DNA from: Thalia democratica
Taxonomy: Eukaryota
Length of the DNA stretch: 64,000 bases
Assembly (NCBI GenBank): GCA_965202585.1
Contig: OZ241826.1
Span: 91,822,001 to 91,886,000 of the forward strand
Direction of reading: 5' to 3'
Part shown: positions 16,301 to 62,817 of the stretch, in pieces
Layout: each line of letters opens with the position of its first letter
Numbering within the stretch: position 1 is the stretch's first letter
The notes under the pieces: generated by a model
The model's input: the letters and a program-made list of their open reading frames with translations, nothing else
Told to the model about the DNA's origin: nothing
Databases searched by the model: none
Made by a program: the position numbers and the translations under genes

Positions 16301-16882
16301 TTTGCAATTTTTCAGGAAAAACTGACCGAAACTGATGTTGTCAGAAATATTGATGCTTTTTTTGTAAAACTATGGTTTCCATGGTCAATATTGGCAGTAA
16401 TGGATTTAAAAAGGGTGCTTACCACTTTTGAACTTAAAAAAAAAATTGTATATTCAGTTACTTTCTAAGTTTTTGTTTTTATTTTTTCATTTTTGTTTTA
16501 AAGTTAGCTCAAAGAATTAGTTACAAGTAAATGGTGTGCAGCTCGATGACCGAAAGGTCTTTCTCCACACCAATCCATTGACCTTAGTTGTGAGCGTTCA
16601 CATTTTTCTTTCTTTCTTTCTTTCTTTTGACAAAAACTAATTTAAGAAGATCGCTTTTTTATGACGTAGTTTTAAAGTTTTTATTTATAAAAAGCATATT
16701 TTAGTTCAACATAAAGAATAATGTCGCAGTTTACACATTTAAGCTTTAACATTTTTGATAAATTTTTGACCAGCTTGAGTCTTTTTTAATATTTTTAAAT
16801 TTTGGGCTACCTAAATGTATATTAGTCTGGTTCTTGGTCACTCGGACTGGCTTTTTACCTCAAAGAGTGACAAACTTTAAAT

Positions 16883-16950
16883 CAGCAATTCTTAACCTGG
16901 AGTAAATTTACCCCAGGTTTAAATACTCTTGTTTTAAAGGTGATTTTCTT
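16883..16950. mobile_element. 5' fragment of the MITE family at 20403-20707
   Basis: CAGCAATTCTTAACCTGGAGTAAATTTACCCC resembles CAGCGGGGTTCTTATCCTGGGGTAAACTCCC. Confidence 0.5.
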
Positions 16951-16984
16951 CCTCAAAACTAGCTACTAACGCAACTACCTCATA

Positions 16985-17763
16985 CGGAATCAAGCTGTAA
17001 CTGTCTTATAACAGCTCGCACATCCGTTCCCGCGCTTACCTCGTAGCTGTGCACTGCGGGAAGCCTCCAACCGTGGAAGAAAACGGGGTGGAAGCACGAG
17101 GGAGCACACTTTCCACTGGGTGGAGGTGTTGGCAGGGACGAAGGACTGCAACGACAAGAATGAGAAAGCGCAGCTGATCGGTGCAAGAGAAGAATGGATT
17201 TTTCGTGAAAAATTTTGCATGAAAAGTTTGAAAATTTACGACTTGGCGCTCACTCACTTGAAAAAAGCCTTCGATGAAACAAACACCGTAAAACCCGTCA
17301 AATTGCTGGAAATTGGGATGAAGTTTGAAGGTGACGTCAAGTGCGTCGTGCAGGGGTGGGGGTGCAATAAAGTGATCGATGTTGATCACTTTTTGATTTC
17401 GATATATGCAAATTAACTGCTCAACAAAGCGAGGCGGGGAAGAGGTAATTTTCTAAAAGGAAAAAAAATGCGGCCACTACGCTAAAAACAAACGTTAAAA
17501 TTTTTGGTAACATTTTGCATTTTTCTTTCGGATGCTTGAGGCCCGGGGAGTCGGCGTTGGGACCGCAGTGTGCGCTCTCGACGGAGGAGAATACCCTTTG
17601 TATGATGGTTGTCGTGTTCGCAGTGCACAGCTACGGGTGCGCGGAGGTTAGGTAAGAAGAGTATTGGGGATGTACGGGATGGGTTGACGGTGGATTAGAG
17701 GAGCAAAAGTTTGGAGTTGTTCCGCACTTGGTCGTTGCGGTGATACCTGGGTGGTACATTTAA
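16985..17763 (+). pseudogene. Trypsin-like (S1) serine protease pseudogene; catalytic domain apparently without introns
   Basis: Across frames: LVAVHC (His motif), YDLALTHL (Asp), VKPVKL, CVVQGWG, KCGHY, FC...DA*, PGESALGPQC (Ser motif), AVHSYGC, PGWY. Several stops and frameshifts. Confidence 0.8.
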
Positions 17764-20402
17764 ACGGGGAGGCTGCAGGATGTTGTGACAATTTTCTGTT
17801 ATTGGTGCGAATTTGTTTGTTGAGTTCAAAGTTAAATTTGGAACTTATATTTTTCAAAACTGTGCTTAAACTTTTAAAACAGTAATCGCAACGTGAAAAA
17901 TGGGATTGAAACTTTAAACTCTTGACTTGAGTAATATGGAGTGATGAATTAGCAAAACTAGAAGAATTTGTTATTTAGATTTTTATTAAAACTGATATAC
18001 ATAAGATGTATATTTTATAATAAAACGTTTTTATTTTTAAAAAATTATCATTCAAAAAAAAATGTACAATATAGATCAGTAGTGCAGACTGATATTTTAC
18101 CCTTTTTTGAATTACTAAAAGTAACTTAAAATAATAAAAAATATGTAGTTCATTTTGTTTGAATTCATCCCTGTTAGTTTATTTTGCTTTTTTTTATGCA
18201 GACCATTTTAGTAATTTTCCCATATTAACTTTTTTCTCAACATTGATCATTTTGTAACATTCTTATTGATTTGAAGTCTGATGACTAAATAAAGAACTCA
18301 TTGGTAGTAACCACCTACTGACAGAAAATATTAGTTTTTAAATTTTGTTTTTTTAAACAATTATTATTGTTTACATTATTCAAGTTTAAATCAAATGACT
18401 AATTTGTTAATTTAATAAAAATTTGGAATAAAATAAAATCTCATGAAAGCTTCAATTTCACTTAATTCAGGTTTAAAATTGAATTGAATAATATTGTATT
18501 AAAAAAAAATATTAACATTTTTCAATTAACAATACTTCGCTTGAAAAAATAAATTCTTGTTTTATGAAAATGGAAATGACAAATGCTAAACACTTTAACC
18601 ATAATGCTAAAGTTTTTTTTTGTATACTATACTTTAAAAAATATCAGTACTACATTTCATTAATAAGTACAGTTTGAAAATAAGCTTCCATGTATAATTA
18701 CTACTAAAACCATGCATATATCTAACAACTGTAAATTTTATTACAGCCTTTTGTTAACACTTAACTTCAGTGCAATCATTTTATTTACTATAACATAGTC
18801 ACTTTTAAAATTTAAAATTATTCCAAATTTAATGTCTCCATTTGATATTTTACTTAAACTCAACTTTTTATAGAAAATAATTACTGAAGGTTATTTCTTT
18901 TGTAATTTATAAAAGTTAAAAATCATGAAACATGTTAGGAAGGTAGACTTAAATTTTTTTACTACAAACTTGTCAAACACATAGGCTAGTTTGAGCTTTT
19001 TTGAAAAACTTAGGCTTACTCATATTTTTTAAAATTTTTTCCTATATCTTTACTAGTTTGGAATTTAATTTTTGAATTTTAGGCTTGCATTTATTACCAT
19101 GAAATTTATTTTGAAGGTTGTTTTTTTTTTAATCCTAGCTATGTATTAAGTCCTTATTTTTATTATGACAGTTTTTGGCATCTAAATTTAACTAGCTGAT
19201 TTTTTTTCAGGTTTTTGCTTGTACTTGTTTTTTTTTTTTTAAACTCAAGATAAATCAGGCTACTATTTGGACACTAAAAATATCTTTTTTAAGGCGGTAG
19301 CTCTGTTAAGTTAAGATCCAGTTTAAACTTTTATAATGGTTTAAGGTTGCCACACACTCAAACTAACCTAGTCTTTTTTTTTTTTGAAAAATTAAGACTA
19401 CTTAGGAAGTAAAATTTTAGCTAGGTTTTGAATTTATCTGGAAAAACTTTGAAAACTTTAAAAACTCAGATGAGCTTAAATTACTTTGAACTTTGTTTAG
19501 TAAATTTAAAAAATCAGACTAGTTACTTATTTTGAAGAGATTTAAGCTAGTTTTATGAACTTAGACCTATTTTTCTTCTTAAGATTAATGTTTGAATTTA
19601 CTTATGTTAAAGCATTAAGCATTAAATAAATTTTTTGATCTACTACTATACTTTCTATTTAAAATGTTTTTTTTTATTTAAAGAGTATAAATTTAAGATT
19701 ATTAATTTATAGTGGTGCAATGTTAAAATGACCAAATTACAAATAATTTTGTGAAACTCATACAACAAATAATTACTACAGCTAGGTTCTTTTATCATAT
19801 TTAATTAAAAATAACTAAGCTTGGTTTTTAAGATGTTTAAAAGCATAATGACCTTTTTGTAGTTATATTAAGATAAAGGTTTACTATTGAATACTTAAAA
19901 AAAAACAGTGTTTTAACTGTAATAAATTTTTTAATATATTTAGAAAAAACCTAAAAAATAACTCTAACTTAAAATACAAGGTCAACTTTTCTTCTTCTAA
20001 GAACTTATTAAATACTTTTTTTACAAATATATAAAAGTGTGTTGTTATTTTAAAGACAGGGTTGACACGCTACTAAGAATATCTTAAGCCAGTTTAACAT
20101 TTTTGAAAAACTCAAGTTTGAACTTTTGTTTAAAACTTTGACTAGTTTTGATGTTTTTCATTTATTCTAGTAAGGTTTTTTTACTTTAAACTTCTTAAAG
20201 ATTTTTTCTTAAAAGCTGTGTTTTTTAAATTCTTTTGTTAATGTTTTATTGTTTTATGACAGCTTCTTTTAAACAGCTTTATTTCTAATATTTTTTACTA
20301 CTTGGCTCATAATTTAATTATATCATAAACTCAAGCAAGCATGAAGTAAACCCAGGCTGAATTTTTACTTAAAAGGGTTACAATCATGAAATGATTCTAA
20401 AC

Positions 20403-20707
20403 CAGCGGGGTTCTTATCCTGGGGTAAACTCCCTTGTTTTAGGGGGTAAATTTTCTTAATTGGAAGTTGTGTAAATTCATATTTATTAGTAATCATTTTA
20501 GTCTTTAATTTAGTATTTAACTGAAGTTTTAAATCTTACGATTATTGACATTAAATAAGCATGATCTTCAAAAAATTTAGTTTTTCCTCCACAAAATTAA
20601 AATTGCATATTGAATGTAAATTTGGTCATTACATTCTAAAAAGAGGTAAATTTCGTATTAAACTTTCAAATATGGTGAAACTCGAAAAAGAAAGTTGAAA
20701 ACCGCTG
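20403..20707. mobile_element. hAT (Charlie-like) MITE with target-site duplication
   Basis: CAGCGGGGTTCTTA ... GTTGAAAACCGCTG, flanked by TTCTAAAC / CTCTAAAC (7/8). Confidence 0.8.
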
Positions 20708-20936
20708 CTCTAAACTAACTAGTGTGTTTAATTACAAACATTGAACATTTTAACCTAAAAACGTTTTACAGCCAACTAAATCATAGATTGTGTATATGTT
20801 CCGTTTGTTAACTATTTAAAACTCTAAAACAGCAAGAAGTGGTTTTCTTTTAGCTTCATGGAATAAAAGAACCTTAAGCTACATTATCAACTCATGACAA
20901 CCACTGAATTTTTTTAACCGTATCTGACGAACAACA

Positions 20937-21349
20937 CAGGGTTGCTAAAGAACCTAGAATTCAGGAAAAACCTGGAATTTGACAATTTAGGCTAAAAAAA
21001 CCTGGAATTTTGAACAAACAATAACTAAGAAACCTTGAATTTTAGACTGAGATCACCAAAAAATTAGAAAATTCTGGAATTTAAACAATTTTTACATGTT
21101 AAAATTTAATATTTTGACCTGACACAAAAATCTATCATAAAGATAAAGTTTTTTGTGAACATCAGACTCTTTAAAAACATTTTAAGGAAGCTTTAAGAAG
21201 TCTTTTAACTTTCGTTGTACTTTTTACAAAATGTTTTACCATAAACTTAATTTCAAACTAAAAATAGATTTTAAAACGTTTAATTATAAAAATCAGGATG
21301 AAATTTAGAAAACCTGGAAAAAATTTGCCAAAATCCTTTTGCAACCCTG
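20937..21349. mobile_element. CAGGG-TIR MITE
   Basis: Perfect CAGGGTTGC/GCAACCCTG termini and repeated AAACCTGGAATTT subterminal motifs. No clear TSD. Confidence 0.7.
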
Positions 21350-22269
21350 ATAAAGTCTTTTGTGATGAAACATTTTTTGTTTCGTTTTTGGTTGGACAAT
21401 TGTTTTTCAAAAAGAAAATAATCACCAAATAAAAGATTACACTGTCCTGGAAAAAACATTAAACTGTATCCTTGGTTAATGACTCGATAACCGAATGGTT
21501 TTTACGTACACTGAGTCGTTGGATAGGTTTACGATTTTTGGGCGCTTTTTTGTCGTATAATTAATAATTACAGCTTTCAATTAGATGCATTATTATATTA
21601 AAAATAAAGAAAAATAAGACAGCTGATTTTTGATAGGTATTGTGAAAATGTAATTTTAATAACATCGGAATACGTGAGCGATATAAACAGAACTTCATTG
21701 TTAAAAACATTAAGTTTAATAAAATTGTTTTTCAATTTTTAAAGGTTTAAATGTAAAAATTGACTAAATTCAATGCGTATAAAATTGGAGTAGTTTTCTG
21801 ATAAAAACAAATAAAGTTGTTTAGGTCTTCCTACTACTACCGGCTCACTAAATTAAAAGCTTGGGGTGCACATACTTTTTTTGCAGCTAAGCATGCACAG
21901 ATTTCAATAACTGTGAAGACTACTAGTTTAATCAAGGTATATTATCGTATATCTTCGTATGAGTTTTTTAAATAATTTTTGCATAGTTTAATAAAATTTA
22001 ATCTTCATTTTCCATATATTTGTCTATTGACATTCTGTTATGTTTAAAAATTACTATCTTTAGATATAATAAAAACAAACTATACAGTATCTTCTTTTAA
22101 AAGCTCTACTTTATTGATATTACATTGAAACTATAAAGAAGGCATTAAAAATTTAAATTATTATGAAAACAAATTTATTAGTTCATCTGTATTAGGAAAG
22201 AAATTAATAGTAACAATTGTTTTAGCAGATTTTAAGCACTAAAATGTATAAAACCAAAAAACAAAAGTT

Positions 22270-22376
22270 TGAAAAATCTGCAGTTCGGCAAAGCTTTCTG
22301 CAATCATGCAGACAAAACGCTTTAAACAAGTTGGAAGAAGAAAATTCGGAAACAGTGAAAGTTCACGGAACAAATG
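22270..22376 (+). pseudogene. Probable BTB-coding exon of a decayed BTB-kelch gene
   Basis: FEKSAVRQSFLQSCRQNALNKLEEENSETVKVHGTN, then G|GTAAT. Phase 1 joins in frame with the acceptor at 23568. Confidence 0.4.
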
Positions 22377-22479
22377 GTAATATTATAAGTTTATATTTAC
22401 TAGTATTTTGTCAATTATAAATAATTTCTTAAACATCAAACAAATTTCTATAACATTAACTTTAAGTCAAAAAATTACC

Positions 22480-22900
22480 TAACCTATCCCTCGGTCGGTA
22501 ATTTTTTTTCTTATTATTTTTTGTAATATTTTTCATTTTAGTTTTATTTTTTGATCAATAGTATCTATAAAGTTTTTTTTATTATTAACATTTTTTTCTA
22601 TTACTGTTATCCCTGTACCTTACCGTCGGTCGGTTTTTTTTTTATTTTTTGCTTTTTTGTTAGTTTATTTTTGTTTTTTATTTTTATAGTTTATTATTAT
22701 TTTTTCGCTATTTCTTTTTACTATAAATGTTACCCCTAACCCTTAATTCGGTCGTTAACTTTTTATTGTTTTGGTTTTTACATTGCCTTTTTCATTTTTT
22801 TAAATTATTTTTTTTTACTCTCGTGTAAATAAGACACTTCTTGCAAAAGTGACTCTCCGTGCTTATTTGACCTTTTGTGCAAAAGTTACTTAGTGTATGT
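22480..22900. repeat. Three ~125-bp T-rich units each headed by CC(T/C)..ACC...TCGGTCG, followed by TGCAAAAGTGAC-like motifs
   Basis: Heads near 22488, 22611 and 22733 with strong T skew between them. The TGCAAAAGTGAC motif recurs near 25217. Confidence 0.5.
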
Positions 22901-23087
22901 TTGAGCCGGCCCAGTGAATAATGTTTATACTATTCTATATAGTCTAAATTGCATGGAGGTATATTAAACTTTATTTAATAGTTTTATGTATTGTAATTTT
23001 TACTGTTTACTTACAATTTCAATGAAAAGGCACGTATGTAAATTTGAATGTAGTTTTCAATAAATAATAAACTTTACCTCACGACTG

Positions 23088-23165
23088 TCAACAGCAGCAC
23101 CCGAAGCAACTTAAGACCGGTTTCGTCCTTTTTAGGACTCATCAGTCGCGAGAAGCTGCTGTTGA
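23088..23165 (-). ncRNA. Minimal type I hammerhead ribozyme with canonical core (23115-23145)
   Basis: Minus strand CTGATGA-GTCC-TAAAAA-GGAC-GAAA-CCG-GTC, flanked by an 11-bp inverted repeat TCAACAGCAGC/GCTGCTGTTGA (23088-23098, 23155-23165). Confidence 0.75.
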
Positions 23166-23568
23166 GGTCAAACCAATCGGTATTACGTGTGTATTCACTG
23201 AAACGACCGTTTGTTGGTAAATTGCAATAAATTGACGCAGCCAAATCCTTCACAGCTCAACGTCTGACATATTGTCAGCTTATTGCGAGAATTTAGTCTC
23301 CGCTCCTTTGATCAGTTTTAATAATTATTTATTTCGGCCATTATCAACAAAGTTGAGAGTATAAATAGAGGTAAAGTTAATTGTTTATTGCTAATGGCGC
23401 GAAACAACTCAACTTTGTTGATGATAGCTAAAATAACTACTTGTTATTTTCGGACAATTAGATGCTTGTATTAGAAACAAATTTATCTTAATAAAAATAA
23501 CATTGAATAATATTAGATAAATAATGAAACTATAAAGAACATCAAATAGATCTAAAACATTTTTTCAG

Positions 23569-24450
23569 ACGAAAAAAAGACAAAAACAACAAAACTTATT
23601 TCACAGTTGAAAGTGAACAAACTTTTATTAGATGGGAAGCCTCAAACCACAACACTAGAAACCATAGAAAACAATACAACATCAAATAACATACTTATTT
23701 GTTTACACTTAGCAAAGTTGTACAATTTGGATGGACATTTTCTGGCCGAAAAAATGGCTTCTATAAAAATGGAAATGGGCTGTAACTCATTTGCAAAAAA
23801 TCGGAAGTTAATACGTTTGAACGGCGAAGTTTACGCGTTTGGAGGTTACGACGGCAATAATACTTATGTGAGCGAGATATCTAAATACACGCCTCACACT
23901 GAACCTAATTGGAGCGCAGTTGCAGTTATTTTCCATGAAGAGTATTGTGCTTGTGGATTTGCAAATGAAATTTTTCTCATGGGAGGTGTTTACAACGGAA
24001 AGGTTACTAACAATGTTTGTTGTCTGAAATTAGAACTTGAAAGAGAACTAACAGAACTTGCGGGAATGATGGAGCCAAGATACTCAGCAGCATGTGCAGT
24101 TTTTGACAATAGAATTGTAGTTGCTGGTGGAATTGGTGCAAAACAAGAAAAAATGAAGACGGTAGAGTCTTATGATGTTCACAGTGACACGTGGACACCA
24201 TTGCCAAGCATGATAAACAGCAGAAGTGACCACAGTTTAGTTGTCGTCAATAACAAGTTGTTTGTAGTTGGTAAATTACAAGACGCGATCGAGGTCTACG
24301 ACAAAATATGTGCAAGGTTTGTTTATTTTAAACCAACACCGCTGTCTAAGCAGTTTTTACCGGATGTACATGCTGAGAGATAAACTACTCTGACTTTTGA
24401 CGTGGAGTCACTATTTGAACATACCAGAACCGGTTTTTCTTTGTAAACTA
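23569..24450 (+). pseudogene. Kelch-repeat (BTB-kelch-derived) gene, internally deleted, probably a pseudogene
   Basis: ORF to stop 24383: BTB-end-like CLHLAKLYNL, then VYAFGGYDG, IFLMGGVY, IVVAGG, KLFVVG kelch blades. No BACK domain. Family-like C-terminal sequence (TLTFDVES) continues in another frame after the stop. Confidence 0.7.
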
Positions 24451-27395
24451 CCTTCTTGGTTAAGTTTTCAGGAATTTCAAGTTTAAACGGTTATTTTAAA
24501 CACGTGTGATTTTAAGCTGATTAAAATATCTGAACATAACAATTATTTATAGCTAAATACTCTTTATTAGAACTTATTATTACAGATAAAAGTTCTTTCT
24601 AGATTTATGAACAACAAACTAATTAGTTTTTAGATCTTAATACTTTTTGCGTTTAGAGTCTAATAATTAGAACACTTTACTAAATCTACAAGCTGGTTTC
24701 AAATATGAAATATATTTATGACTTACACTTAAGTGTTTATACTTCATAGTTTTGTTTACTTAGCTAGCTGAAAAAAAGTTGTTATTAGTAGTAGATTTTT
24801 ATATTACTTTAATTAGTGTTTATATTAATTTTCCAGAGTGATAATTTTTACTGATCAGATTTTATGTTTCTGGTAATTTTTTAAACGCTTGTATTTTACT
24901 GTTTAAATTCCGTTTTTCTAAATTTGAAACTTTTCCAGATTAATTTATCTCTCCTTATTTTTTGTTTTTTCTCTTTTTCTTATGATAGGTTAATAAAATG
25001 CATATTATATACATCATAGGTCGTTGTTGTAGCTTTAAATATGAAAATAGTAGCCTATCAATTTAGATTTAATATAAAATCAATATTTGTTTAACTTTTA
25101 TGTAACTTGTTAAAATCATAAATTAATTTTATGATTTTTATAACTTTACTCATTTTATTTCCTCTAACTGAATATCAATTAAGTTTCATAAAAGTCAGCC
25201 GTGCAAAATTGAACCATGCAAAAGTGACAATCGTTAAAGAGTTTCACTTGTCCAAAAATTACGCTTATGTTCATTACTTTACATTTAAATACATGTAATT
25301 ATAATAATTTTCTTAGTGAATAAAGACAGTATTTCAAGACATAATTTTTACAGCATTTTTTATAGCAACTTAGTCGTATTTTTAGTTTAAATTAGTTAAT
25401 TTAGTTTAAAAAACAGGTTGTTAAAAAAAATTTCTTGAATTAAATACAGTTTTGTTTTAATCATACATATTGAAATTTTATACTTAGAAACTTAAACAAT
25501 TCATCAATTAAATTATAACCAAAATAACAAAATTTGTTTCTTTATCATATTAAGATCATTACTTGGCATTAACTAAACACAATAAAAACGTCTATAATAA
25601 AAACTTAAAATGAAAGAACTTAATGTATAGAAAGAAGGTGAAATTTCACTTTAAAAAGTGCTTTTTAAATAAAAAATACTTCCTTACAGCTGACATTTTT
25701 CAATAAATCAAGTAAAAACGTTTATAATTTTGTTTCCTGTTTTAGTTAGTAAAAAAAACATTTAATGGTAAAACTAGAACCAAAAGAAAATGTATATCAG
25801 TACTTAATACTTACTAATACTACATGAAATTTTTGTTTTAAAACGAAGGTTTACAATACAGACAACATTTATTTTTTCATTCTACTCGCAAAAAATGTTG
25901 TGAATGATTAGCATACATACGTAAAATATCTTAAGTTATGAAAAGTATTTTAGTTTGCACGTAAAACTAGTTAAGTTTATTTATTAGTACACACTTTAAG
26001 AAAATACTATTAACTTTGAATAGCTTAAAGGAATTCAGAACGTTAGATTAAATAGTTAATACATTTTTGTAGCCAAGTTTATTTCTTTCGGTACGTTTTA
26101 CGCAATGAGATAAGATTACAGAAGTGAACTCAATCATCAGACCCGCGGAATTAAATCTTTGCAAAATTTAAACTGAATAAGTTTGATAACCAGGTAAATG
26201 TTGTGCGAATAAGGTAAAGTTAAAAAGCTCTAGCCCGTCGAAAAGTTTTTTTTTCTGGGTTACACCTTAATAACCCTTAGATTGACGTATTTTAGGTTAA
26301 GTTATGGAATTACTTCAGTCTTTAAGTCTTCTTCAACAACAACTATTAATTCTATTTCAGGTACTTTAAGAGTTGCTTTATATAAAAAGTAGTTATTATA
26401 TCTGAAATGAATCTAGTTAAGATAAAACTAAATTTAACGCTTTTCAAAAAACCTTGAAAGGATTCAATTTCGAGAAAAACTAATTTAACTTAAATAACTA
26501 ACGCAAAATAATTAGAATTTTTCATAATAACTTAGTTTAGTACAAGCAAATAAACAATATATTACAAGTTTCTATGGTTGTGTAATATTAATAATGCGTA
26601 AAACAAAATATTTTATTATTGACTTTATACATTGTAGGTTTACTCTTGAAAAATTAGTAGACAGAAGTGTCGAAAATGTTGTTTTTTTTAGTATGAAGCA
26701 AAATCAAAATAGTAAACAATTTTTTTAACTTAAAAACCACAGTAGCTGAAAGTTTTAGTTTTAAATGTGTTTAAAAAGAAATCAGTATAGTTGAAAGGAT
26801 GTTTAAATATATTTATTAGTCGCCAGGTTTTTTGTAATCAACATTTAAAGACTTTTTTTGTTTTTAAAGTTATTTTAACTCTCACTTAAGATAATTTGAC
26901 ACGTGTTTTATCATTAACTAGTTTTGATCAATTTAAATTAAAGTTACTAACTAATTTAACGAAATTATTCTCAAAAAACTAGATTTTTTGTCGTTTTTTT
27001 AAAACTTTATAGCTGTTTGAAAATATTTTTAAACTGTTTTTATATACACTAACTTGCTTACAGAAATATTAAATTTAAACCTCAAAAAAACAAACTGAGA
27101 CGATTTATTTTTAAAAAGTGGCATAGTTTATCAACAATACCTAATATATACGTTATAAGTAAAAAATAATAAAATTGTTAATTGCTCTAAACTGACAAGA
27201 GAGAATTCTCAACTCATGTAGCTACATAGAAATGAATAAAATTCTATTTTTGCAGATTGTTAAAAACAACACAATATTCAGTCATATAGCAAACTATAAG
27301 CAACTTCAGTTGTTGAACAACTCTTATTCAAATTAAAAACCTTATAAGTTATAATAGTTGAACAGTTCTTATTACTTTTGAAAAACTTTAAAAGT

Positions 27396-27822
27396 TCACA
27401 AACTCGACGAAGCGTTCGTCTGACTTCTTGCTTCTGCGGTTCTGCTAATTGGCGTTGTGTGCGACTGAACTGACATCCTCTGCAGGGAAATCCCCTTGTT
27501 AGTGCCAAAAAATCCCGCCTTAATCCTCTTCAACGACCGCTTGAAGTCTTGGTCGCGGCTCTGGTATATGAAGAAGTTCCAGAAGGAATTGTAGAAAAGG
27601 ACCACGTTGGCCGCGTGGGAAAACCCCTTGAACAGGCCGTAGTTGGACTGGCTGAAGTTGCTCAGGTCGGCAGTGTCGAGGGAAGGGTCGAAGATGAAAA
27701 GCATGTTGGAGATGATCATGAGGATGATGGTGGAAGTGAACGCGGATATCATTATGAGAAGCGTCTTGGCCACCCTGACTTCGGTGCGGGCCGATCTCGA
27801 CACATTGTTTGACTTCATTTCC
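27396..27822 (-). CDS. Class A (rhodopsin-like) GPCR, exon 4 (TM6, TM7, tail)
   Basis: VAKTLLIMISAFTSTIILMII (TM6), ANVVLFYNSFWNFFIY (TM7, NPxxY variant). Acceptor AACAACAG, stop at 27396. Confidence 0.88.
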
Positions 27823-28069
27823 CTGTTGTTTATATATTTTAGATTGTCTATCAAATTTAATTTTATTTTGTATTAGAACTTTATTTTAATTTCTTTAATA
27901 GTTATTTTTTATTAAAGTAACTAGTAAACTTGACAAGGTAATTTTTACTAAGTTTAAACAGTTAAAAAGTATTTTTTTACTACTTGATTATTTTCAAAGG
28001 ACACCATTATAATCAAAACTATCTACATTCAAGTCACTTATACTATAAAGTACCTGTAGTAACACTCAC

Positions 28070-28708
28070 CTGTTGTGAAAGTACAGGACCACCAGCACCA
28101 CCAAGCTGTTGACCAGCATCAGGCCCAACGAGACGAAGTTGGTCACTAGGGTGTGCACCCGAGCCGTCTTCTCATCAACGAGCATGAAGTAGGGACTGGT
28201 GATCACGGACGCCTTCGAGCTGAGTACCCCGGCCACGAGGTTGCAAGTTGAAATAACCCACACAAGGACGCAAGCAGTCATTGTGACGTAACACTTGCTG
28301 CTTTTGACGTAGCGCGCCGGGAAGAGGGTGGCGAAGAGGCGGTCGAAGCTGGCGGCGATCAGCGTGAATATGGACACCAGGAACGACAACCAGCTGACGA
28401 AGCCGGTGAAAATCAGGAAACTATCCACTTCTTCCAAGGTCAACGCGGTCTGGTCGTCGAGCGAGAAATTTTCTCCGCTGGCGGTAGCTCTTTTGTTCAG
28501 TCTTTCCGTTGCAAAGTAAATGGCAGGAATGAAAGCAAACACGCCCAGCATAAGATCGGCAACAGCTAGGTTGATTCTGTAAAGATGTTGTGGAGTTTTC
28601 ATTTTAGGGTTTTTCCCAAATATGTACAATGCAATGGAGTTGAGAGTAATTATTGCAAGAGCAGATACAAAGTGAAAAAAATGCAGGAAGTAAGTGCTGC
28701 CCGTGCAT
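28070..28708 (-). CDS. Class A GPCR, exon 3 (TM1-TM5)
   Basis: NSIALYIF (TM1), NLAVADLMLG (TM2), AASFDRLFA (TM3, DRY variant DRL), VLVWVIS (TM4 Trp), TM5. Acceptor ATTACAG, donor GTGAGT, 639 nt with consistent phases. Confidence 0.9.
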
Positions 28709-28941
28709 CTGTAATTTATGTATTTTTATAGAAAATAAAAATGATTTTCCATTGTAATATTTTTTAAGACTAACATATACATAATTCAACCTAACACCAT
28801 TAAAGCTTAAAAATAAGTATATTACTTTTCCCAAAAAACAAAAAAAAGTAGTAATTAAACTAAAAAATCTTCTGTTAAACAACTAATATAACAATCAGTA
28901 ATAAACAAAAAATATAGTTGGTATCTATAAACAAAACTAAC

Positions 28942-51150: not shown

Positions 51151-51387
51151 TGTTTAAAATTTATGTTTAACCTAAGTATTGGTTTAAGGTACAACATTCT
51201 AAGTTACTAAATTTTATTTGATAGTCCACATTTTCAACCAACAAATCTAATTTATACATTATTTTGATATTCTGGTTTAAAACATTTTGTTGTTATAAAT
51301 AAAATAAATAATAAAGAAAATAAAAAATTCTTCAGAATTAGATTTTTAAATAGTCAAAGTAAGTCCTATGTTTTTTTTTAACTTGAG

Positions 51388-51521
51388 TCCGTGATCACCA
51401 GTCCCTACTTCATGCTTGTGGACGACAAGACGGCTCGGGTGCACACCCTAGTGACCAACTTCGTGTCGTTGGGTCTCATGTGCGTCAACAGCTTAGTGGT
51501 GCTTCAAGTCTTTCACAATAG
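51388..51521 (+). CDS. 5'-truncated duplicate GPCR, first remaining exon (TM5); functional status uncertain
   Basis: SVITSPYFMLVDDKTARVHTLVTNFVSLGLMCVNSLVVLQVFHNR matches the end of GPCR exon 3 with a 6-nt in-frame deletion. Donor GTGAGT kept. In-frame ATG at 51412. Confidence 0.55.
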
Positions 51522-51794
51522 GTGAGTGTGCCTTGTACAATTACTATATAGTATAACTAACTTTAGTTTGATAGTTTTGGTTGTAATGGTGTCGTTTGAA
51601 GACAGCTTGAAAATAATCGAGCAAAAAAAAAACATAAAAAAAATTGTTTATTTAATTAGTGGAAAAATACCTTTCTTGTTTACTATTTACTCTTTGACAA
51701 AGTAAAACTAATCAAAAAACTTATAACTTTAATAAAGTAGTAAAACCAAATGTAGTTAACTGTAGCATACAAATCTAACATACATGAACAACAG

Positions 51795-52212
51795 GGAAAT
51801 GAAGTCAAACAACGTGTCGAGATCGGCCCGCACCGAAGTCAGGGTGGCCAAGATGCTTCTCATAATGATATCCGCCTTCACCTCCACCATCATCCTCATG
51901 ATCATCTCCAACATGCTTTTCATCTTCGACCCTTCGCTCGACACCGCCGACCTGAGCAACTTCAGCCAGTCCAACTACGGCCTGTTTAAGGGGTTTTCCC
52001 ACGCGGCCAACGTGGTCCTTTTCTACAATTCCTTCTGGAACTTCTTCATATACCAGAGCCGGGACCAAGACTTCAAGCGGTCGTTGAAGGCGGGATTGTT
52101 TGGCACTAACAAGGGGATTTCCCTGCAGAGGATGTCGGTTCAGTCGCACACAACGCCAATGAGCAGGACCGCAGAAGCAAGAAGTCAGACAAACGCTTCG
52201 TCGAGTTTGTGA
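51795..52212 (+). CDS. 5'-truncated duplicate GPCR, terminal exon (TM6-TM7, tail); functional status uncertain
   Basis: Paralogous to 27396-27822 with 10 synonymous and 3 non-synonymous differences and a 9-nt in-frame deletion. Acceptor and stop kept. Confidence 0.65.
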
Positions 52213-53100
52213 ACTTTTAAAGTTTTTTACTGAATAAGAATTGTTCAACAGCTGATAATCTCTTATAGTTTGCTATAGGACTGAAACGTTGTGTTGTCTT
52301 TAGTAATCTGCAAAAATAGAATTTAATTCGTTTCTTTATAGCTACATGAGTTGAGAACTTTCTGTTGCCAATCTAAAGCAGTTTCAAATATAAGTTTTTT
52401 TTTTACTTATAACGTGTTAAATACTATTGATAAACTATGCCCTTTTTTAAAAATAAGTTGGTTCAGTTTTTTTTTTTTGAGGTTTAACTTTAATACTTGT
52501 GTGTTCAAATTAACATTCAAGTTATAGTAGTTTCAAAATATTTTTTAAGTTCTTTAAAAATTTAAAAACTTGTTAAGCTTATTAATATTATGGTACCATA
52601 AAAATTTGAATATAACACTTGTTGCTTGTGTTTAGCAAAATTATACTAAGAAGTTCTAATTATTTTCGTTAGTTTTTTATTTCAAACTAGTTTTTCATGA
52701 CATTAAACACTTTCGGGTTTTTTAAAAATACAAATAAATTTAGTTTCTGTCACTTAAGTCCTTCTATAACACATAAAAGCGTTTTGTTAGGGCCTGAACT
52801 ATCTTAAATAAAAACATTGTGACTTAAGTAATTTTAAACTTAGTTTCGAATATCTTAATCAAGTGGTTAGTAAGATATTCGACATAAAACCTTATCCTTG
52901 TCAAGAAACAGAAATTTTATTCTATTTAATTCACATAAATTTTATCTAGTTAGCAAACTTATTTCTGATGTAAATTTTAATTACATTTGGTTTAGCGGGC
53001 TGATATTCATGTTTGCAGTTATACCTTTCGCGCGCTAAACTCCATTTAAACTTTGCAAAGATTGGCGGTTCAGTAATATTCTGAGGGACTAATATCCGGC

Positions 53101-53439: not shown

Positions 53440-54239
53440 GTTGTTTTTATTTTATTATTTCTAAAATGATACAATTACAACAGTTTAAATTTTAAGTTTA
53501 AAATCACGCTATTTTTCTTCAAAAATAAGTATTACTTATGGTACAATGAAAACTAAAGTATTTAAAACAATATATTATGATAGTATAAGTATACATAAGT
53601 TTAAATTAAGGTGTTTTTTTAAAACTTTATTATACATAATTATTACTGTACCTTCAGGAGCGTGTCTAGGCATTTTTAAGTAAGAAAGGTTAACTCTTTT
53701 TGATAAAAATAGTAGTGTATTTTCTATTATGGCTTTACTTAAACACTTTTTATTATGTAAATGTCTTTAAAGACTTGGTTTATATATAATATGTAAGTAA
53801 GTTTTTATAATTGTTTACTAAAACATTAAAAGCTATTATTGTAAACTATGCAAAAGCCTACTTCTTTGCCTTCTAGTTTGCAAACTACTAATCATACTAC
53901 TTGTTGTAATACAAAGCCTACTATGTTTTAAAATAATAATTGGATTTCTAAAAACCCTTTAGATTAAAGTAGAAAAGTTTTTATTATCAAAATGAATTTC
54001 TAATTGCTTTCAAATTTATAAATAAAAACTACTCAGTTTTAACAAAAAATAAAATGTCAAAAACTTGTAAGTTTAGTAACCAAATAGAAAAAAATATATA
54101 CATTGAAACTAAACATATTTTAATTATCGGAAATATAAAACAATCACTAAAAGTAAAATAAAACAATTGCTTACTGTACTTTCACTGCTTATAATGACCT
54201 GATAACCAACTGTAACGTGAAAAATTTTGGTTAAAATGA

Positions 54240-55300
54240 TCAAAAACTTGCTGTTGTAATTAACCAAAGAAATTTCAACGAATTAAAAGTTATGCTTGAT
54301 CCCGTTCGTCCGCAACATTATACAGTCTAAAAGTATCACTTAACACTTGCCTGCAACAACTAATGAATAACAATTGTCCTCAACATTAAGAATCTAAAAC
54401 TATCATTCCACAGTATATCGCAACAATACAACTATCACATCACAGTAGACCACAACAATACAATTAGCACATCACAGTAAATCGCGATAATACAACTATC
54501 ATATCACAGTAGACCCCAACAATACAATTAGCACATCACTATAGATTGCAACAATACAACTGTCACATCACAGTAGATTGTAAGAATACAACTATCACAC
54601 CACAGTAGACCCCAACAATACAATTAGCACATCACTATAGATTGCAACAATACAACTGTCGCATCACAGTAGATTGTAAGAATACAACTATCACATCACA
54701 GTAGATCGCAAGTGTACAACTATCACATCACAGTAGATTGCAATGTTACAACTATCACATCACAGTAGATCACAAGTGTACAACTATCACATCACAGTAG
54801 ATTGCAATGTTACAACTATCACATCACAGTAGATTCCAAAAATACAAGTATTACATCACAGGAGTTTTATAATTTACACTGGTTACAAAGCAACCAACTC
54901 CTGCTTTGACTTTACTAGTAGGCTATTGGTGTGCGGTGGGCTTAATAAAAGCGATGAATGCTGTAATAATGTTATGAAAATAAAATCAGTTGTATCATAT
55001 AACTAAGAACGCAGTAACTGGTCATCAATACCAAACATGAAAGAAGCCGAAGCTTTTACAGTATGGTTGTTGTCAAAATCAAGATGTTTGTAATCGGGGT
55101 CGGTTGCAATAACAGTGAAGTTTTTGATAACAATAACAGTAAATATGTTTATTTTTATTTGTTCGAAGTACCCAGAACTTTTTTGTTCCATCGAAACCGC
55201 CTTGTATGACAGTAAATAGATTGTTGTTGGTAAGAAAAGTTCCATGGCTTTCTGTTTTGACACGAAAGAAAAACGGTGAAAATTTTTATTTGAATTTGTC
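54240..55300 (+). pseudogene. Second kelch-repeat pseudogene, interrupted by a minisatellite-bearing insertion
   Basis: Across frames: RNFNELKVMLDP/RSSA (~54270-54325), then after the array SCFDFTSRLLVCGG, NWSSIPNM, FYSMVVVKIKMFVIG, SEVFDNNNSKYVYF, AFCFDTKE. Homologous to 24050-24450. Confidence 0.65.
54398..54862 (+). repeat. 32-bp minisatellite array 1 (~14 units)
   Basis: Unit CAACTATCACATCACAGTAGATTGCAACAATA and variants. Confidence 0.92.
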
Positions 55301-55693
55301 AGATGTTTTTTTTTTCATACGTTAGCTTACTTATATTTAAGTTTTTAGTGTGTTTTTTTAAGTTTAATTTATAAGTCCAAAAGAAGACCTTCAAAACTAT
55401 TCTATTCGTGCTTCCGATTCAATAGCGATTAATTTGATTTAAGTAACTTTTACCATTTATTTTAATAGATTTACTTTTGTGCAGAAATTTGTTTTAATGC
55501 ACCATGAAAGTGTAGTCAAAATTGTTTGTTTTTAAATTTAACATTTAAGAATTATTAGAATTTAAAATATGTAGTTTATTACTTTGGTGTTTTAAACAAA
55601 TATTATAAAAACAAGTTTGTTTTTTGTCTCTTTTGTTTACATTTTATCTTTTTGGCTTTTTTTTTATTAGGGTAATAACGTCAATTTATTTAA

Positions 55694-56040
55694 TGTGATT
55701 TGATAGTTGTATTATTGCGATCTACTGTGATGCAATAGTTGTATTGTTTGCTGTCTACTGTGATGTGATAGTTGTACTGTTGAGATCTACTGTGATGTGA
55801 TAGTTGTATCGTTGCTATCTACTGTGAAGTGATAGTTGTACATATCGCTGTCTACTGTGATGTGATAGTTGTACTCTTGAGATCTACTGTGATGTGATAG
55901 TTGTATTGTTGCTATCTACTGTGATGTGATAGTTGTAATATTGCTATCTATTGTGATGTGATAGTTGTACATATCGCTGTCTACTGTGATGTGATAGTTG
56001 TACTGTTGAGATCTACTGTGATGTGATAGTTGTATCGTTG
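55694..56040 (-). repeat. 32-bp minisatellite array 2 (~10 units, inverted)
   Basis: Reverse-complement units TCTACTGTGATGTGATAGTTGTA... Followed by a ~300-bp tail (56041-56348) homologous to 59006-59328. Confidence 0.92.
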
Positions 56041-56859
56041 AGGTCACAATTTAAAAATTTTATAATTTTCACTCAATTTTCTGGAGTTAATGGTGAATGG
56101 CAAAAAAAAAGGTCTTAGGTTTTTTCAATGGTAGTTTTGAAATATTTTTACAGATATTATAGGAAAGTTCAGAAATTTAGGGTGCCATAAGTTTTAAACG
56201 GGGAGCCACAAGGACATAATTTGTAACTTCCACTAGATATTTTCGAGTTGATAATGAAGAGAAAAAAATCTTAGGCATATTTAATGGTAGTTTTCTGAGA
56301 AATCTTGTCAGAAGGGGCCATACCTTTTTTATTCTTCTAAAGGGAACCTGTTGAAAAAGAAGTAAGGGAAACTCTGTTCTAAGTACTTGACAAATATTAA
56401 TGAAAGGATTTAGTAAAAGTTTAAACGATTTGTTTCATTATTAATTGCCAGTTATTAGAGGTGCAGTTTTTTGGTTACATAATTATACAAATAACTACAC
56501 TTCAAGTTTTTTACTAATACTTTTAGGGAGCCACATTTCTGAAGACAAGTTAAACTAGAAAATCTTTGTAATGATCATGTAGGTTTAATTCTTAAATATA
56601 TGATAAAAAAAATTAACATACTCATTATACTAAAACTGTCTACGTTTTAGTAAGTTTTAAAACTTTTTTTAGTCATACAAAAAAAAAAATAATTCTTTTT
56701 TTGATAAGAAACATTAATGTAGGTCTAATTAAAAACATTTAGACGGCAAAGTTATAATTTAACAATAGAGAAAGTTAAAAATAAGAAAATATTTTAATAC
56801 TAAATTGAATTATTTCCACCCTGGAAATTACACATGACTAAACTTACTTGCTTGATTTT

Positions 56860-57290: not shown

Positions 57291-57910
57291 TTAAAATTTT
57301 CTATTGCAAAAAGAAATAGTTGATAATTTTATGTATTCCCAAACTTTTTCTGCTAAAATTTTACTCGAAGACTATATGTTTTTCTAACAATCTCCTAAAT
57401 AAAATTTAACAATACTAATTGATATATTGCAAAAAGTTAAACTAAACACATTTATTATCGACCAACCGTGGTTTTTTAATACAATACAAAAATCTAATTC
57501 TAATGAAATTTAATTTTATTTTCTAAACTTTTTTCATTAAGTCTTTAACATATAACAACTTGCTGTATGATCAAAACCTAAAACTTACATTTTGAAAATT
57601 TTGCACAGGCCTATAAAAAATCCAAATATCTCGCCTAGTACATTTCTTGAGTACTATTGGGCTAACTGGTGATGACTAAATAATACCGTCACTAATAAAA
57701 ATCAACCAACGGTTGCAAATAAAAGGTCGTTTTTTAAAAGAGAGTACTTAGCTTAACAAACATAAAAAAAAAGCTAATATAAATTACGAGAAAGCAATTC
57801 ATTTATTATTATTTTACCACTAGTTACCGATTTCTGCTTACAAATTTATATGTTATAACATACATATCACTGATTAAATATATTCTAATTTCTAAATTTC
57901 AGAAATGATA

Positions 57911-58222
57911 TAACTATCACATCATAGTAGACTGCAACATTGCAACTACCACATCACAGTAGACTGCAACAATACAACTATCACATCACAGTAGACTGCA
58001 ATGGTACAACTATCACATCAAAGTAGACTGCAATGGTACAACTATCACATCACAGTAGACTGCAATGGTACAACTATCACATCACAGTAGACTGCAACAA
58101 TACAACTATCACATCACAGTAGACTGCAATGGTACAACTATCACATCACAGTAGACTGCAATGGTACAAGTATCACATCACAATAGACTGCAACTTTACA
58201 ACTATCACATCACAGTTAATTG
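57911..58222 (+). repeat. 32-bp minisatellite array 3 (~9-10 units)
   Basis: Unit CAACTATCACATCACAGTAGACTGCAATGGTA, very homogeneous. Confidence 0.92.
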
Positions 58223-58804
58223 CAAAGATTTAACTAACACTCAACAGGCATTTTATATTATAAGTAAACTTTTGACGCAGTTCTATAAAAGAAGTAGCAT
58301 CGATTTAAAACTTGACTAATATTTTTACAATCTCCAACTTTTAATTTGAAGTAAATTGAGTTTAGTAAGAACGAAAAAACTAACAATTAAATTAGTTTTT
58401 GACAAGTCAAGGCTTTTAATTTATGAAAAAACTTTAATTTTAATTAGCATTAGCTAATTTTTACTTAAACAATATTCAAAAAACCGAGTTTTAATTCATG
58501 TAATAATGATTGTGTTACAACAATCGGTATAATTATAACCTAAAATTTGTATTTTTTTTCAAATTACACATAGACCAACTATTACTCTACTAATATTTAT
58601 AACTGTTGTCCGTAACACCTTGGAGTCTACAATCATCACATCTCTGTTGTTTAGTTATTTAATAAATTAATCTTTGACGCAACTTTTTAAAGTTTTTTTA
58701 CGTTTACTTAATTGTTTTTTCTAAATGTCTTGGCCAATTTGAAATAACCGATTTAAAGCTATCATTCTAAGTAGCATTTTCAAAAAACTTTTAGCTACGT
58801 ATTT

Positions 58805-59328
58805 ACATCGTTGCGATTTACTGTGATCTGATAGTTGTATCGCTAGAAGTCTACCGTGACGTAATAGTTTTAATGTTGAAGTCTGCTGCAATGTGATAGT
58901 TGTATTGTTCCAATCTACTGTGATGTGATAGTTGTACCATTGCAATCTACTGTGATGGAATAGTTGTATTGTTGCAATTTACCGTGATGTGATAGTTTTT
59001 TGGTTGAGGTCATTATTTGAAACTTACGTTAGATACTCTAGAATTCATTGTAAAATGCAAAATAAAAGCTCTAAGGTTTTTTCAATGAAGTTTTGAAAAA
59101 AATATACAGATTTTATGGGAGAATTCAGAAATTTAGGGGTCATAAGTTTCAAAATAGGGAACAACAAGGCCATGATATGAAACTATATATTTTTGATTTG
59201 ATGATGAAGAGCTAAAAATAAAGTTCTTAGGCATATTAATGATAGTTTACTGAGAAATCTTGTCTGAGGGGGTTATAGCTTTTTCTATTTTTTAAAAGGG
59301 GGGCTTTTGATTTTTTTGGGAAACCCTG
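58805..59328 (-). mobile_element. Minisatellite array 4 (~6 units) plus ~320-bp tail ending in a GGGAAACCCTG TIR-like end
   Basis: Inverted 32-bp units at 58805-59000, tail shared with 56041-56348, terminus matches the CAGGG MITE families. Confidence 0.65.
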
Positions 59329-59334
59329 CTGTAT

Positions 59335-61110
59335 ATTAAGAGAGTTATCACTTTTAAAAAGGTAGTCAAAGTGTTTCAATAATAGCCTGAATAATCTGGT
59401 GTATTTGTAAAAAAAAATTACAAACCAAAAACTAAAGAAAAATATTTAGTTAAATAAGTTTAGATGCCGAAAGTTGTCGTAATGAAATAAAGGAGTTAAT
59501 ATATAGCTAGAATCAAAAAAGATCACCTTCAAGAATAAATTTCATATTAATAATTGTTAGCCTAAAGTTCAAATAAAAAAAATTCCAAACTAGTCAAGTT
59601 TTAGGAAAGAACTTTATACGAACCTTAGTAAGCCTGAGTTTTTCAAAAAAGTTCAAACAAGACTATGTGTTTGACAGTTCTGCAGTAATAGATTCAAGTC
59701 TACCTTTTCAGTATATTTCATGATTAGAGACTTTTATTAATATTAAAGAGATAATCTTTAATGAAATCAAGTTCAGTTGAAATATTAAATGGAGAAATTA
59801 AATTTGTAATTATTTAAAATTATAAAGGTTACTTTATAATAATAAATAAAGTATTACACGGAAGAAAATTGTTAGAAACTAGCTTATATTAAATTTTATA
59901 ATGCTAAATAAACACATAATTTTACCTGTAAGTATGTATGACAGCAAATTTAAGCTGTATTTATTACTGAAATGTGGTATTAATGTTTTTCAAAAGTGTC
60001 ATATAAAAACAAATTTTAGCGTAATGTTTATTATTGTTATTTAAAAACTGTTACTATATTTTTTTTCAAATAAAACATTGTCCTTTTGAATTTTAAACCT
60101 GCAATTTAAGTTTTATCGGAGTTATTATGAGAAAATTATTTTTTTTTTCCAAAACTTAGTTGGAATAACTAATTATTCATGTGATTCAAAATTAAATAAA
60201 TTATCTAAACAAGAATGGTTATTTAAAGATAGTAAAAACTTAAAAATAACATTTTCTATATTAGGTCTTTAAGTGGATGCTCCCAGTGAATAGTTTCATC
60301 AGACTTCAAATCAATAAGAATGTTACAAAATGTTTTAAATGTGAATACTAAAAAATTTAAAATGGGCAAATTATTAATATGGTCAATATTAGAAAATGCA
60401 AAACAAATTACCAGATATAAATTTGAACTAAATGAACTACATGTTTTTTATTCATTCAATTTAGATTTAATAATCTGATACATAAAAGTCTATTTTGCAA
60501 TTTAAAACTAAATACAAATTAAATTACCAATCTGCACTACTGACCTTTATAATTATTATTATCACGCTTTATTACCTATGTCAAAAGTTTATAAACTTTA
60601 CACTCATACTTAAAGTTACAATTATTGTTTTAGAAATTTTACACAAATTAATACTTGCAGCGTACCAATGACTTTAACTACCAAGGTCAAATCACGCAAA
60701 CAACCGGCAGAAACTTATCCTACAAACCGGCAGGTCCTTTATTTAAAAATGCCACCGCAACGACCATGACGGAATACTACAAACATTTACTTCTCTGTCT
60801 CACCGTCAACCCTCGGCCGCTCTGACATCCGTACCCCAAGCACTCTCCTTCTCCACCTAAATGCACCCGTAGCACCGCAAACACAAAACCATCATGCAAA
60901 GGGTTTTCCCCTCCATCAAGAGCGCACACTATTGGCGCTCCCGAGTCGTCCACTGCCGCCTGCATCCGGCATATTACAAGTGTCGCATCCGTAGCAGAAC
61001 TGCAAACTTTTATCGAAAATTGAAGCGTTGTTGTGAGCGTAGAGGCCGCATTTTTCTCCTTTCAAAAGACTCTTTCCTGCCTCGCTTCATTCTGCTCGTT
61101 TTTTCCAAAT
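59335..61110 (-). repeat. Inverted duplicate of 17400-19310
   Basis: Continuous non-coding homology, for example an exact ATTTTGTAACATTCTTATTGATTTGAAGTCTGATGA at ~18250 and ~60297-60332 (reverse complement), and 18800-19310 vs 59335-59830. Confidence 0.85.
60737..61110 (-). pseudogene. Second trypsin-like serine protease pseudogene (3' half only)
   Basis: EKCGLYAHN...LQFCYGCDTCNMPDA then frameshift to DDSGAPIVCALDGG...FVFAV. Nucleotide homology to 17410-17760. Confidence 0.75.
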
Positions 61111-62817
61111 TTCATTTTGTCACTAAAAGTTGTAATTTTTTTCATATTAGAGTTAGTTTATTAAAATTTTTTAAATACTTTTTGTGAAACACACTTAGTT
61201 TTTGATTTGAAAAATTTTAGTCCTGTTGTATCCCAAGAGACTTGGTAAAGAGCAGTGTTAGACGTATTAAAAAATTCCCGACATCAAGATTTAAATTACC
61301 TAAAACATAAATTAAAACCTTAACGCAAGGAATTTTTTATGCTTTTGATACTGCTTCTTACCAAGCCTGACCAAACAAATTGATGCTAAGTTGTCAGCAA
61401 CGTTGATGGTTTTGACAAAATTTGATTCTGAAAAACCGCTTTTGTATGACGTAGTTTCAGCCAAAATTTTTATTCAACGGTTCGTTGTTTAAACACGCAC
61501 ATTTTGTATAACATGATAATGGTATCGCCGCTGCTTAAGTTACAGTTAAGTAGGCGGTTGATTTGTGAGATAAATAACGACTTATTACTAAATTTATTTG
61601 TAAAGTTTTTTTTTACTCTTTTTAAAATTATTATGGCGGTTTTAGTTTTTCAGAAAGTTACTTAAATTATAAGCCTAAATTATTAACAATTTGCTTTAGC
61701 GTTTTTAAACATATTTAATTTAGATTTTCAGAGAGTTTAAGAAGTTTATGTATAATTATACTAAGTTACTAGCAGCAAAATTTTTAAACACTTTAAATTC
61801 AAAAACAGTCATTGTAAAGTATGATCTATCTAACTTTAAAAACTTTAAAATACGGCCTTTAAGTAGGGTCTCTAAAATTTGTTTTCATAATCGCTTTTTT
61901 AACAGAAAATGAAAATGATCGCGCAGAATACTAGTGTAAGTGTTAGTTATTTTTATTGTTAATTAAGGTTAGTTTGTTACAAAGACAATACAAACTTTTT
62001 CTTAAAATTAAAAAAAAAAGTTTAGCAGTATATTTTTGTTAAGAACAGTTACCCTTTATAGTTGTTTAAAGTTGTTTATATAAATTTAAACAATCAATTT
62101 TGAACAATATATAAACAATATATAAACTTATCTATCTATAACATTTTTGCAATATTTCACCTAGTTAAACTTATCGTTTTGCAAGTACAAGTTATAATTA
62201 ATTTCATTTAAATGAACAGTACTAAGTGTTATACAAAGCGAATTACTATTTGTAGTTTATGAAGTAATATAAGGATTGAAACGTGTAAAAGAAATGAATT
62301 AGAAATTGTAGCAATGAGTGAAAAACTTGAAATTTAGTACTTGATAGTTATAATTTGAAACAGTAAGCTATTTTTTGTAAGTAAAAGAATAAACATTATA
62401 AATATAAAATCAAACCTCTTAAAAAGTGTTTTAGTAAAAGTTGACATACAAGTAAGATTTGTAACAGTGTAATTAAAAAATTAAAAATAAATATCGACTA
62501 GTGGCAAATTATAAAGTAGACGCATAAAATTAAGCACTTGAGAACTAATAAAAAAAAGCCCTTGTTACGTAACAAAAGCTATTACTATATAATAAATGAA
62601 GTTCATACAACTATTTTAACTCAAAGAAAATGTATTAATTTTTATGCTAAACCGTGTACTCCTTTTATAAATAAGACAAAACTTAAGTTTAAGAAAATAG
62701 ATAAGATTTATTTATGTATAATAGGACTTTGTTTTTACTCAAACCGATTTAGCAACAACAAAAAAACATACTCTCTAATATCAATTTAGATCAAAAACAA
62801 ACAGAAATAAAAACAAT

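Follow-up and report, generated by a model that had tools for sequence, protein, structure and literature searches.

Genes and Repeated Blocks around Evx

Evx, an even-skipped class homeobox gene, is flanked by duplicated DNA in a 64,000-nucleotide stretch of the Thalia democratica genome (C1:91822001-91886000, hereafter the window; an animal genome of 802 Mb with 27% G+C). Evx occupies 41092-44069 on the + strand, in four coding open reading frame (ORF) segments with a Pfam Homeodomain match; the top PDB matches of its homeodomain are to Even-skipped (E 4e-19), followed by an engrailed construct (5e-14). Two pairs of inverted blocks, named here A/A' and B/B', lie on either side of the gene and are probably the two arms of one old inverted duplication. 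A direct repeat, D/D', is found between them, and a short direct fragment, F/F', just outside them. An earlier note on this DNA had described these blocks, together with a kelch gene, as a segmental duplication whose order is a mirror image around ~39.5 kb and whose strand alternates from block to block.

Other genes of the window include the exons of a NUBP-type P-loop ATPase (8.7-12.2 kb), a trypsin-like exon (17012-17413, + strand; Pfam Trypsin), a kelch ORF (23556-24380, + strand; Pfam Kelch_1), and the exons of a rhodopsin-family G protein-coupled receptor (GPCR; 28725-28069 and 27872-27399, - strand; Pfam 7tm_1). Evx had been described as single-copy. It is single in the 288 kb examined, where no remnants of its exons were found outside the gene, including near D'; however, an additional Evx-like homeobox exon occurs at C6:79221204-79221356 (- strand), with 76% identity over 51 amino acids (aa), and Evx may therefore not be single-copy genome-wide. 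A literature search on salp and tunicate genomes found nothing on this locus.

The Two Inverted Arms

Comparison of the window with itself recovers both inverted blocks. Block A (17401-19309, + strand) contains the 3' exon of the trypsin-like gene and DNA downstream of it, and aligns in inverted orientation with A' (61113-59336, - strand), which holds a protease 3' fragment only, with an identity of 66-72% over 1.9 kb. Block B (26136-28213, - strand) contains the 3' flank, exon 2, the intron, and the last ~145 bp of exon 1 of the GPCR gene. Its counterpart B' (51384-53004, + strand) is a truncated GPCR copy whose splice sites are kept; 26996-28210 matches 52568-51387 inverted at 80%, and 26136-26620 matches 53004-52556 inverted at 63-65%. 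The earlier assignments of 59.3-61.1 kb to 19.3-17.4 kb and of 51.4-53.1 kb to 28.2-26.1 kb, both inverted, are thus upheld.

The two pairs share more than their orientation. They are collinear and in mirror order, and A and B are separated by 6.8 kb on the left vs 6.3 kb on the right. Neutral divergence is equal along the arm, with Kimura two-parameter (K2P) distances of 0.30-0.48 in A vs 0.33-0.48 in non-coding B (0.33-0.36 for block A as a whole, 0.30 and 0.48 for its sub-blocks, 0.33-0.36 for the GPCR intron, and 0.48 for the distal non-coding part of B). At the inner end, similarity is high until position 28213 on the left and 51384 on the right and is lost within one base, in the middle of GPCR exon 1. 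Because order, orientation, spacing, and neutral divergence are shared, the A and B blocks are read as one collinear arm, and A/A' and B/B' together would most plausibly represent a single inverted duplication, old and ~10.8 kb long, whose arms are 23 kb apart and have Evx between them. We read this duplication as having truncated the protease gene at one end and the GPCR gene at the other. The centre proposed for the mirror order coincides with the midpoint of the two arms, at 39.3-39.8 kb. Homology of the arms is not continuous: in the self-comparison, their interiors (19.3-26.1 kb and 53.0-59.3 kb) have nothing specific in common.

The right GPCR copy is by far the nearest relative of the left one, since exon 2 of B' shares 94.6% of its amino acids with B, the next paralogues reaching 57-59%; at the DNA level the identity is 80%, compared with 76% over a short stretch for the next paralogue. 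The truncated copy (51382-52209, + strand) has kept donor and acceptor sites, and a polypyrimidine tract and AG lie exactly at the duplication breakpoint. Synonymous (dS) and nonsynonymous (dN) divergences are 0.117 and 0.009 in exon 2, and 0.44 and 0.078 in the exon 1 remnant. To judge from these features, the fragment looks as if it were used as an internal exon. The dS of exon 2 is well below the divergence of the intron, so that some gene conversion is also possible.

With regard to the protease block, the left arm and its interior (~15.7-26.1 kb) have two closer copies, one at C7:53722211-53732429 (84-87% identity) and another, inverted, at C1:91708578-91717905, 122 kb upstream (72-92%). 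For block A, the copies in the window, on C7, and at C1:91.71 Mb are at a K2P distance of 0.138 from one another, whereas A' is at 0.33-0.36 from each of these three younger copies. The right-arm protease is therefore an older outgroup and not the nearest relative of the left copy. It had been suggested that the duplication would be called into question if protease and kelch copies grouped with paralogues elsewhere in the genome; for the protease this applies by half, in that the left block groups first with the C7 and C1:91.71 Mb copies.

The protease itself is decaying. Compared with the A' and C7 copies, its left 3' exon contains frameshifting indels, the upstream copy at C1:91.71 Mb is without part of the gene, and a search of the right side for the middle trypsin exon found no counterpart. 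The right-arm fragment contains a 94-aa open frame (60780-61061, - strand) with a DSGAP motif that resembles the trypsin active-site GDSGGP; this frame has no Pfam match at E 0.01, and its left counterpart (17540-17700, + strand) is frameshifted.

The Direct Repeat Flanking Evx

Inside the spacer, block D (33801-38935, + strand) and block D' (46054-49768, + strand) form a direct repeat that flanks Evx. It consists of three pairs of islands, which are collinear, on the same strand, and the best matches of their queries in 274 kb: 33801-33997 with 46054-46261 (55 bits vs 33 bits for the best match in a 254-kb null), 35706-35964 with 47310-47588 (58 bits vs 41 bits in the same null), and 38572-38935 with 49414-49768 (87% identical). 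The earlier note had equated 46.0-51.1 kb with 33.8-40.3 kb as one direct block. Its direct orientation stands, but the block is not continuous, as ~0.8 kb of ~5 kb, or ~16% of the stretch, can be aligned, and self-comparison detected nothing between 38.9-40.3 kb and 49.8-51.1 kb. A further candidate pair, 36122-36535 with 49999-50394 (58 bits), was rejected as low-complexity noise, the same query scoring 57 bits in the 254-kb null. Since both D copies are located within the spacer, their mirror order is trivial and carries no information.

The third island, 364 bp on the left (38572-38935), occurs exactly twice in the 802-Mb genome. It contains a core of 239 bp (38663-38901 and 49498-49739) that is 97% identical between the copies; identity falls on both sides, and the flanks have K2P distances of 0.25-0.55 or are unalignable. 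The core-bearing copy in D lies 2.2 kb upstream of Evx and that in D' 5.3 kb downstream. The core is non-coding, rich in TAAT-type motifs, and limited to these two genome copies; a contig of a second organism is 98% identical to it and has doubled depth. The conserved core corresponds to no known RNA, as Rfam gave no family anywhere in the window.

The 65-bp Fragment at the Outer Junction

Fragment F (16625-16685, + strand) lies upstream of the protease gene, and its direct copy F' (61410-61474, + strand) lies 300 bp past the outer end of the right arm. The 65-bp alignment has a local score of 31; the highest score among 2961 random null windows is 26, and the opposite orientation gives 12. 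A 21-mer core of F occurs at five sites in the genome, namely the two in the window, two in the young copies of the left-arm unit described above, and one other. On this evidence F' is a genuine homologue of F. The direct match proposed between 61.38-61.53 kb and 16.58-16.73 kb is accordingly real, although merely 65 bp long.

The Kelch Fragment and Foldback-Type Repeats

The kelch ORF in the interior of the left arm is without a specific counterpart in the right arm. A kelch-like frame is present there on the + strand at ~54.9-55.2 kb, with one stop and one frameshift and 40% identity to the left kelch over 47 aa. This pseudogene fragment lies centrally in a foldback-type repeat (53843-56376) with inverted arrays of a 32-bp satellite at 54398-54861 and 55687-56040. 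This repeat has at least 306 genomic matches, several of which span arms and middle. Copies at C5:67.51, C1:91.70, C2:73.79, and C6:69.57 Mb cover its flanks, its middle, or both, and those at C1:91.70 Mb and C2:73.79 Mb contain this kelch fragment at the corresponding position. A second foldback-type repeat of the same family (57904-59300; arrays 57904-58216 and 58810-58997) abuts A', its segment 58819-59300 being 76% identical to 55853-56344 of the first. Judged by these similarities, most of the right-arm interior is probably transposon-derived, and the first repeat seems to carry a captured kelch gene fragment in its unique middle. As in foldback-type DNA transposons, a unique middle is enclosed in both repeats by inverted arrays of 32-bp units, and their relatives in the genome number in the hundreds; unlike in such transposons, the middle of 53843-56376 holds a kelch gene fragment and not a transposase.

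When the right fragment was compared with the genome, its own locus topped the list and the left kelch was 149th of the 150 matches listed (E 0.12); among these, more than 140 loci outscored the left kelch, with identities of ~40-63%. Close relatives of the left kelch ORF are limited to the copies on C7 and at C1:91.71 Mb (71-73%). The wider family, of which the best 150 of 4866 candidates were scored, consists mostly of intact ORFs of 470-500 aa that are 38-48% identical to the left kelch. Because the right fragment lies inside a dispersed repeat and more than 140 loci are closer to it, it is not a copy of the left kelch, and the likeness between the two would be a transposon-borne family similarity. 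The direct kelch copy that had been placed at 54.2-55.3 kb is thereby withdrawn, and the kelch sequences do group with paralogues elsewhere in the genome. With the kelch block carried by a transposon, the two inverted blocks belonging to one arm, and D inside the spacer, the alternation of strand from block to block is mostly absent.

In the genome, single-exon kelch ORFs of ~470-500 aa form a very large family with dense clusters, for example at C1:114.6-116.3, C8:30.5-31.7, and C5:19.3-19.7 Mb. The C7 and C1:91.71 Mb copies of the left-arm unit have open kelch frames of 310 and 323 aa.

Origin of the Arrangement

From the blocks, their orientation, copy numbers and divergences, and the inner breakpoint, we infer a number and order of events and a mechanism. 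The reading that we favour, with some confidence, comprises one old inverted duplication and a separate old direct duplication in the spacer, followed by transposon insertions, turnover of the arm interior, and younger copying of the left arm. A segment of ~10.8 kb (now 17401-28213), extending from the interior of the trypsin-like gene to GPCR exon 1, would have been copied in reverse 23 kb to the right (now 61113-51384), so that the two arms came to bracket a spacer with Evx. The interior of the arms would then have turned over, the right one now consisting mostly of the two foldback-type transposons and the left one of the kelch gene and other repeats. A separate direct duplication within the spacer, of similar or greater age, may have left DNA from upstream of Evx on both sides of the gene, and in D/D' only the 239-bp non-coding core would have stayed nearly identical. 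Later, the left arm and its interior (~15.7-26.1 kb) would have been copied twice, to C7 and to the site 122 kb upstream. F', which is left over by the simplest model, may be a junction by-product: a short templated insertion would account for it, and so would a small inversion at a later time.

Several points weigh against this reading. The arm interiors have no detectable likeness, and the continuity of the arms is taken from order, spacing, and equal divergence alone. The D/D' islands, with K2P distances of 0.42-0.55, overlap the more diverged parts of the arms, so that D/D' and the arms might have originated together in one event. Serial template switching accounts more naturally than independent events for the position of F' beside the inverted arm. 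In addition, no event is polarised, there being no outgroup locus, and the reads consist of short contigs only, which do not bridge the junctions and leave the long-range order without independent confirmation.

The strongest competitor, though an unlikely one, is that serial template switching during replication, namely fork stalling and template switching (FoSTeS) or microhomology-mediated break-induced replication (MMBIR), made the whole right side at once. On this path, D would have been copied forward, a strand switch at 28213 would have led back to 17401, and a further switch would have added ~65-150 bp of F in forward direction before the return. The order on the right, with D' direct, B' to A' inverted, and F' direct, agrees with this path, as do the sharp breakpoint at B', the short, specific, direct fragment at the outer junction, and the overlapping divergences of all blocks (K2P 0.3-0.55). 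On the other hand, ~16% of D can be aligned vs nearly all of A, which suggests that D/D' is older, or at least that an equal age is not evident, and argues weakly against a single event. Unrelated DNA also intervenes, with 1.6 kb of repeat-rich sequence between D' and B' and 0.3 kb between A' and F', and microhomology at the junctions cannot be read at this divergence. Replicative template switching is known for complex rearrangements such as the duplication-inverted triplication-duplication (DUP-TRP/INV-DUP) structures of human genomic disorders. The locus resembles these in that direct and inverted copied segments adjoin and a short fragment copied from nearby lies at a junction; it differs in the unrelated DNA between the segments and the unreadable microhomology.

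A more specific form of this idea is somewhat less likely still. It holds that a single template-switching accident duplicated an Evx-proximal regulatory element across Evx, provided a truncated pair of GPCR exons, since kept by selection, with a new splice acceptor in front, and also added a short templated piece of DNA at the far junction. If this were true, the locus would be a datable complex rearrangement that created a new regulatory copy and a new set of exons beside a developmental regulator.

The earlier note, which also named template switching as an alternative, had as its main model one large inverted duplication running from A through D, after which several local inversions flipped D', the kelch block, and F'. 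It is correct in the inverted duplication with Evx between the arms, and the positions of D', B', and A' on the right do mirror those of D, B, and A on the left. As a whole, however, this scheme is improbable. The kelch block does not duplicate the left kelch, the breakpoint at 28213 inside an exon is a true one, and no counterpart of 28.2-33.8 kb is present between B' and D'. For D' to have once adjoined B' in an inverted arm, another deletion and an inversion would therefore have had to use exactly this breakpoint. More events are needed than in the alternatives, and the inversions are superfluous, F' alone asking for an extra step (a small inversion or a templated insertion).

An assembly artefact, in which the right arm would be an allele joined wrongly or a repeat that was collapsed or misplaced, is extremely improbable: nothing specific speaks for it apart from the failure of the short contigs to bridge the junctions, and the arms differ by K2P 0.3-0.5, far above allelic divergence. 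Pieces specific to the right arm are found in the contigs at 100% identity and at a depth of ~36-48, about equal to that of neighbouring unique DNA, and the shared cores (the GPCR exon and the 239-bp core) have a depth of 85-102, as expected of two collapsed copies. Misassembly is thus unlikely, as the copies are too diverged and depth is single on the unique parts and double on the shared cores; neither the near-identical arms nor the halved depth of a haplotig mis-join was found, and the read depth that might have exposed a mis-joined allele speaks for a real right arm. Sequence specific to the right arm also occurs at ~96% in the run of a second organism, and one contig with a match starting exactly at 51387 fits the left GPCR copy.

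The inverted duplication that we favour has familiar parallels. Inverted segmental duplications with a unique spacer occur in many animal genomes. Like such palindromes, the locus has two opposite arms of collinear blocks and equal divergence, genes truncated at the breakpoints, a redundant interior in decay, and one exon that is much more alike than the surrounding DNA. B' is nearest to B, and A belongs to a younger clade of three copies, to which A' is the outgroup. In contrast to them, the arms here are old (K2P 0.3-0.5) and largely eroded, and the 23-kb spacer carries a developmental regulator and its own internal direct repeat. Seen thus, the structure is an ordinary old inverted duplication, notable mainly for the presence of Evx in its spacer.

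The locus shows how the surroundings of a conserved developmental gene can withstand segmental duplication more than once: Evx remains single in the region, and the protease, kelch, and GPCR genes next to it are copied, truncated, and eroded. Inverted arms that contain a tract of 470 bp at 97% identity could permit inversion of the spacer that bears Evx. The parts that may deserve further work are perhaps the 239-bp core, at 97% on both sides of Evx, and the truncated GPCR copy with its conserved splice sites and low dN/dS.

Other Copies and Repeats in the Neighbourhood

The left-arm unit of ~10 kb was considered as a transposon or other mobile element, and this was rejected, as terminal repeats were not found in the window copy. 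In the C7 copy, the search for terminal repeats yields only an 80-bp inverted match of 76%, and the ends of the young unit copies differ (15723/25814 vs 15870/26069). The C7 copy sits between two inverted copies of a separate repeat of ~3.6 kb, which is also present at -5.4 to -1.9 kb of the window.

A young dispersed element of ~260 bp (16369-16628) has copies of 93-97% identity on many contigs (3429 candidates at first look). It is not present in the C7 and C1:91.71 Mb unit copies, and is by this comparison a recent insertion into the left arm, made after the younger unit copies. High-copy repeats in the left-arm interior are located at 23060-23442 and 20937-21356, the former being found elsewhere as tandem and inverted arrays of ~310 bp. 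A low-copy piece 15 kb past the right arm (76537-76904) matches 15566-15911, at the left edge of the 10-kb unit, inverted at 68%; short relatives of this piece occur near the upstream foldback repeat and at either end of the C7 copy.

A further inverted duplication lies to the left, between C1:91719925-91728787 and C1:91786900-91795300 (81-86%), which correspond to -104.1 to -95.2 kb and -26.7 to -35.1 kb of the window. The first of these segments directly adjoins the upstream unit copy, and its junction is ~20 bp wide where the window side has 42.6 kb extra, including the NUBP gene. Taken as a whole, the inverted duplication between C1:91.70-91.73 Mb on one side and the left arm and the DNA 27-35 kb left of the window on the other is larger and younger than the one around Evx. 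A broader proposal, that C1:91.70-91.73 Mb is a deleted copy of the whole region from -35 to +55 kb, was dropped for the kelch/satellite part, a dispersed repeat that is no closer there than elsewhere; for the part next to the unit copy (-26.7 to -35.1 kb) the proposal is upheld.

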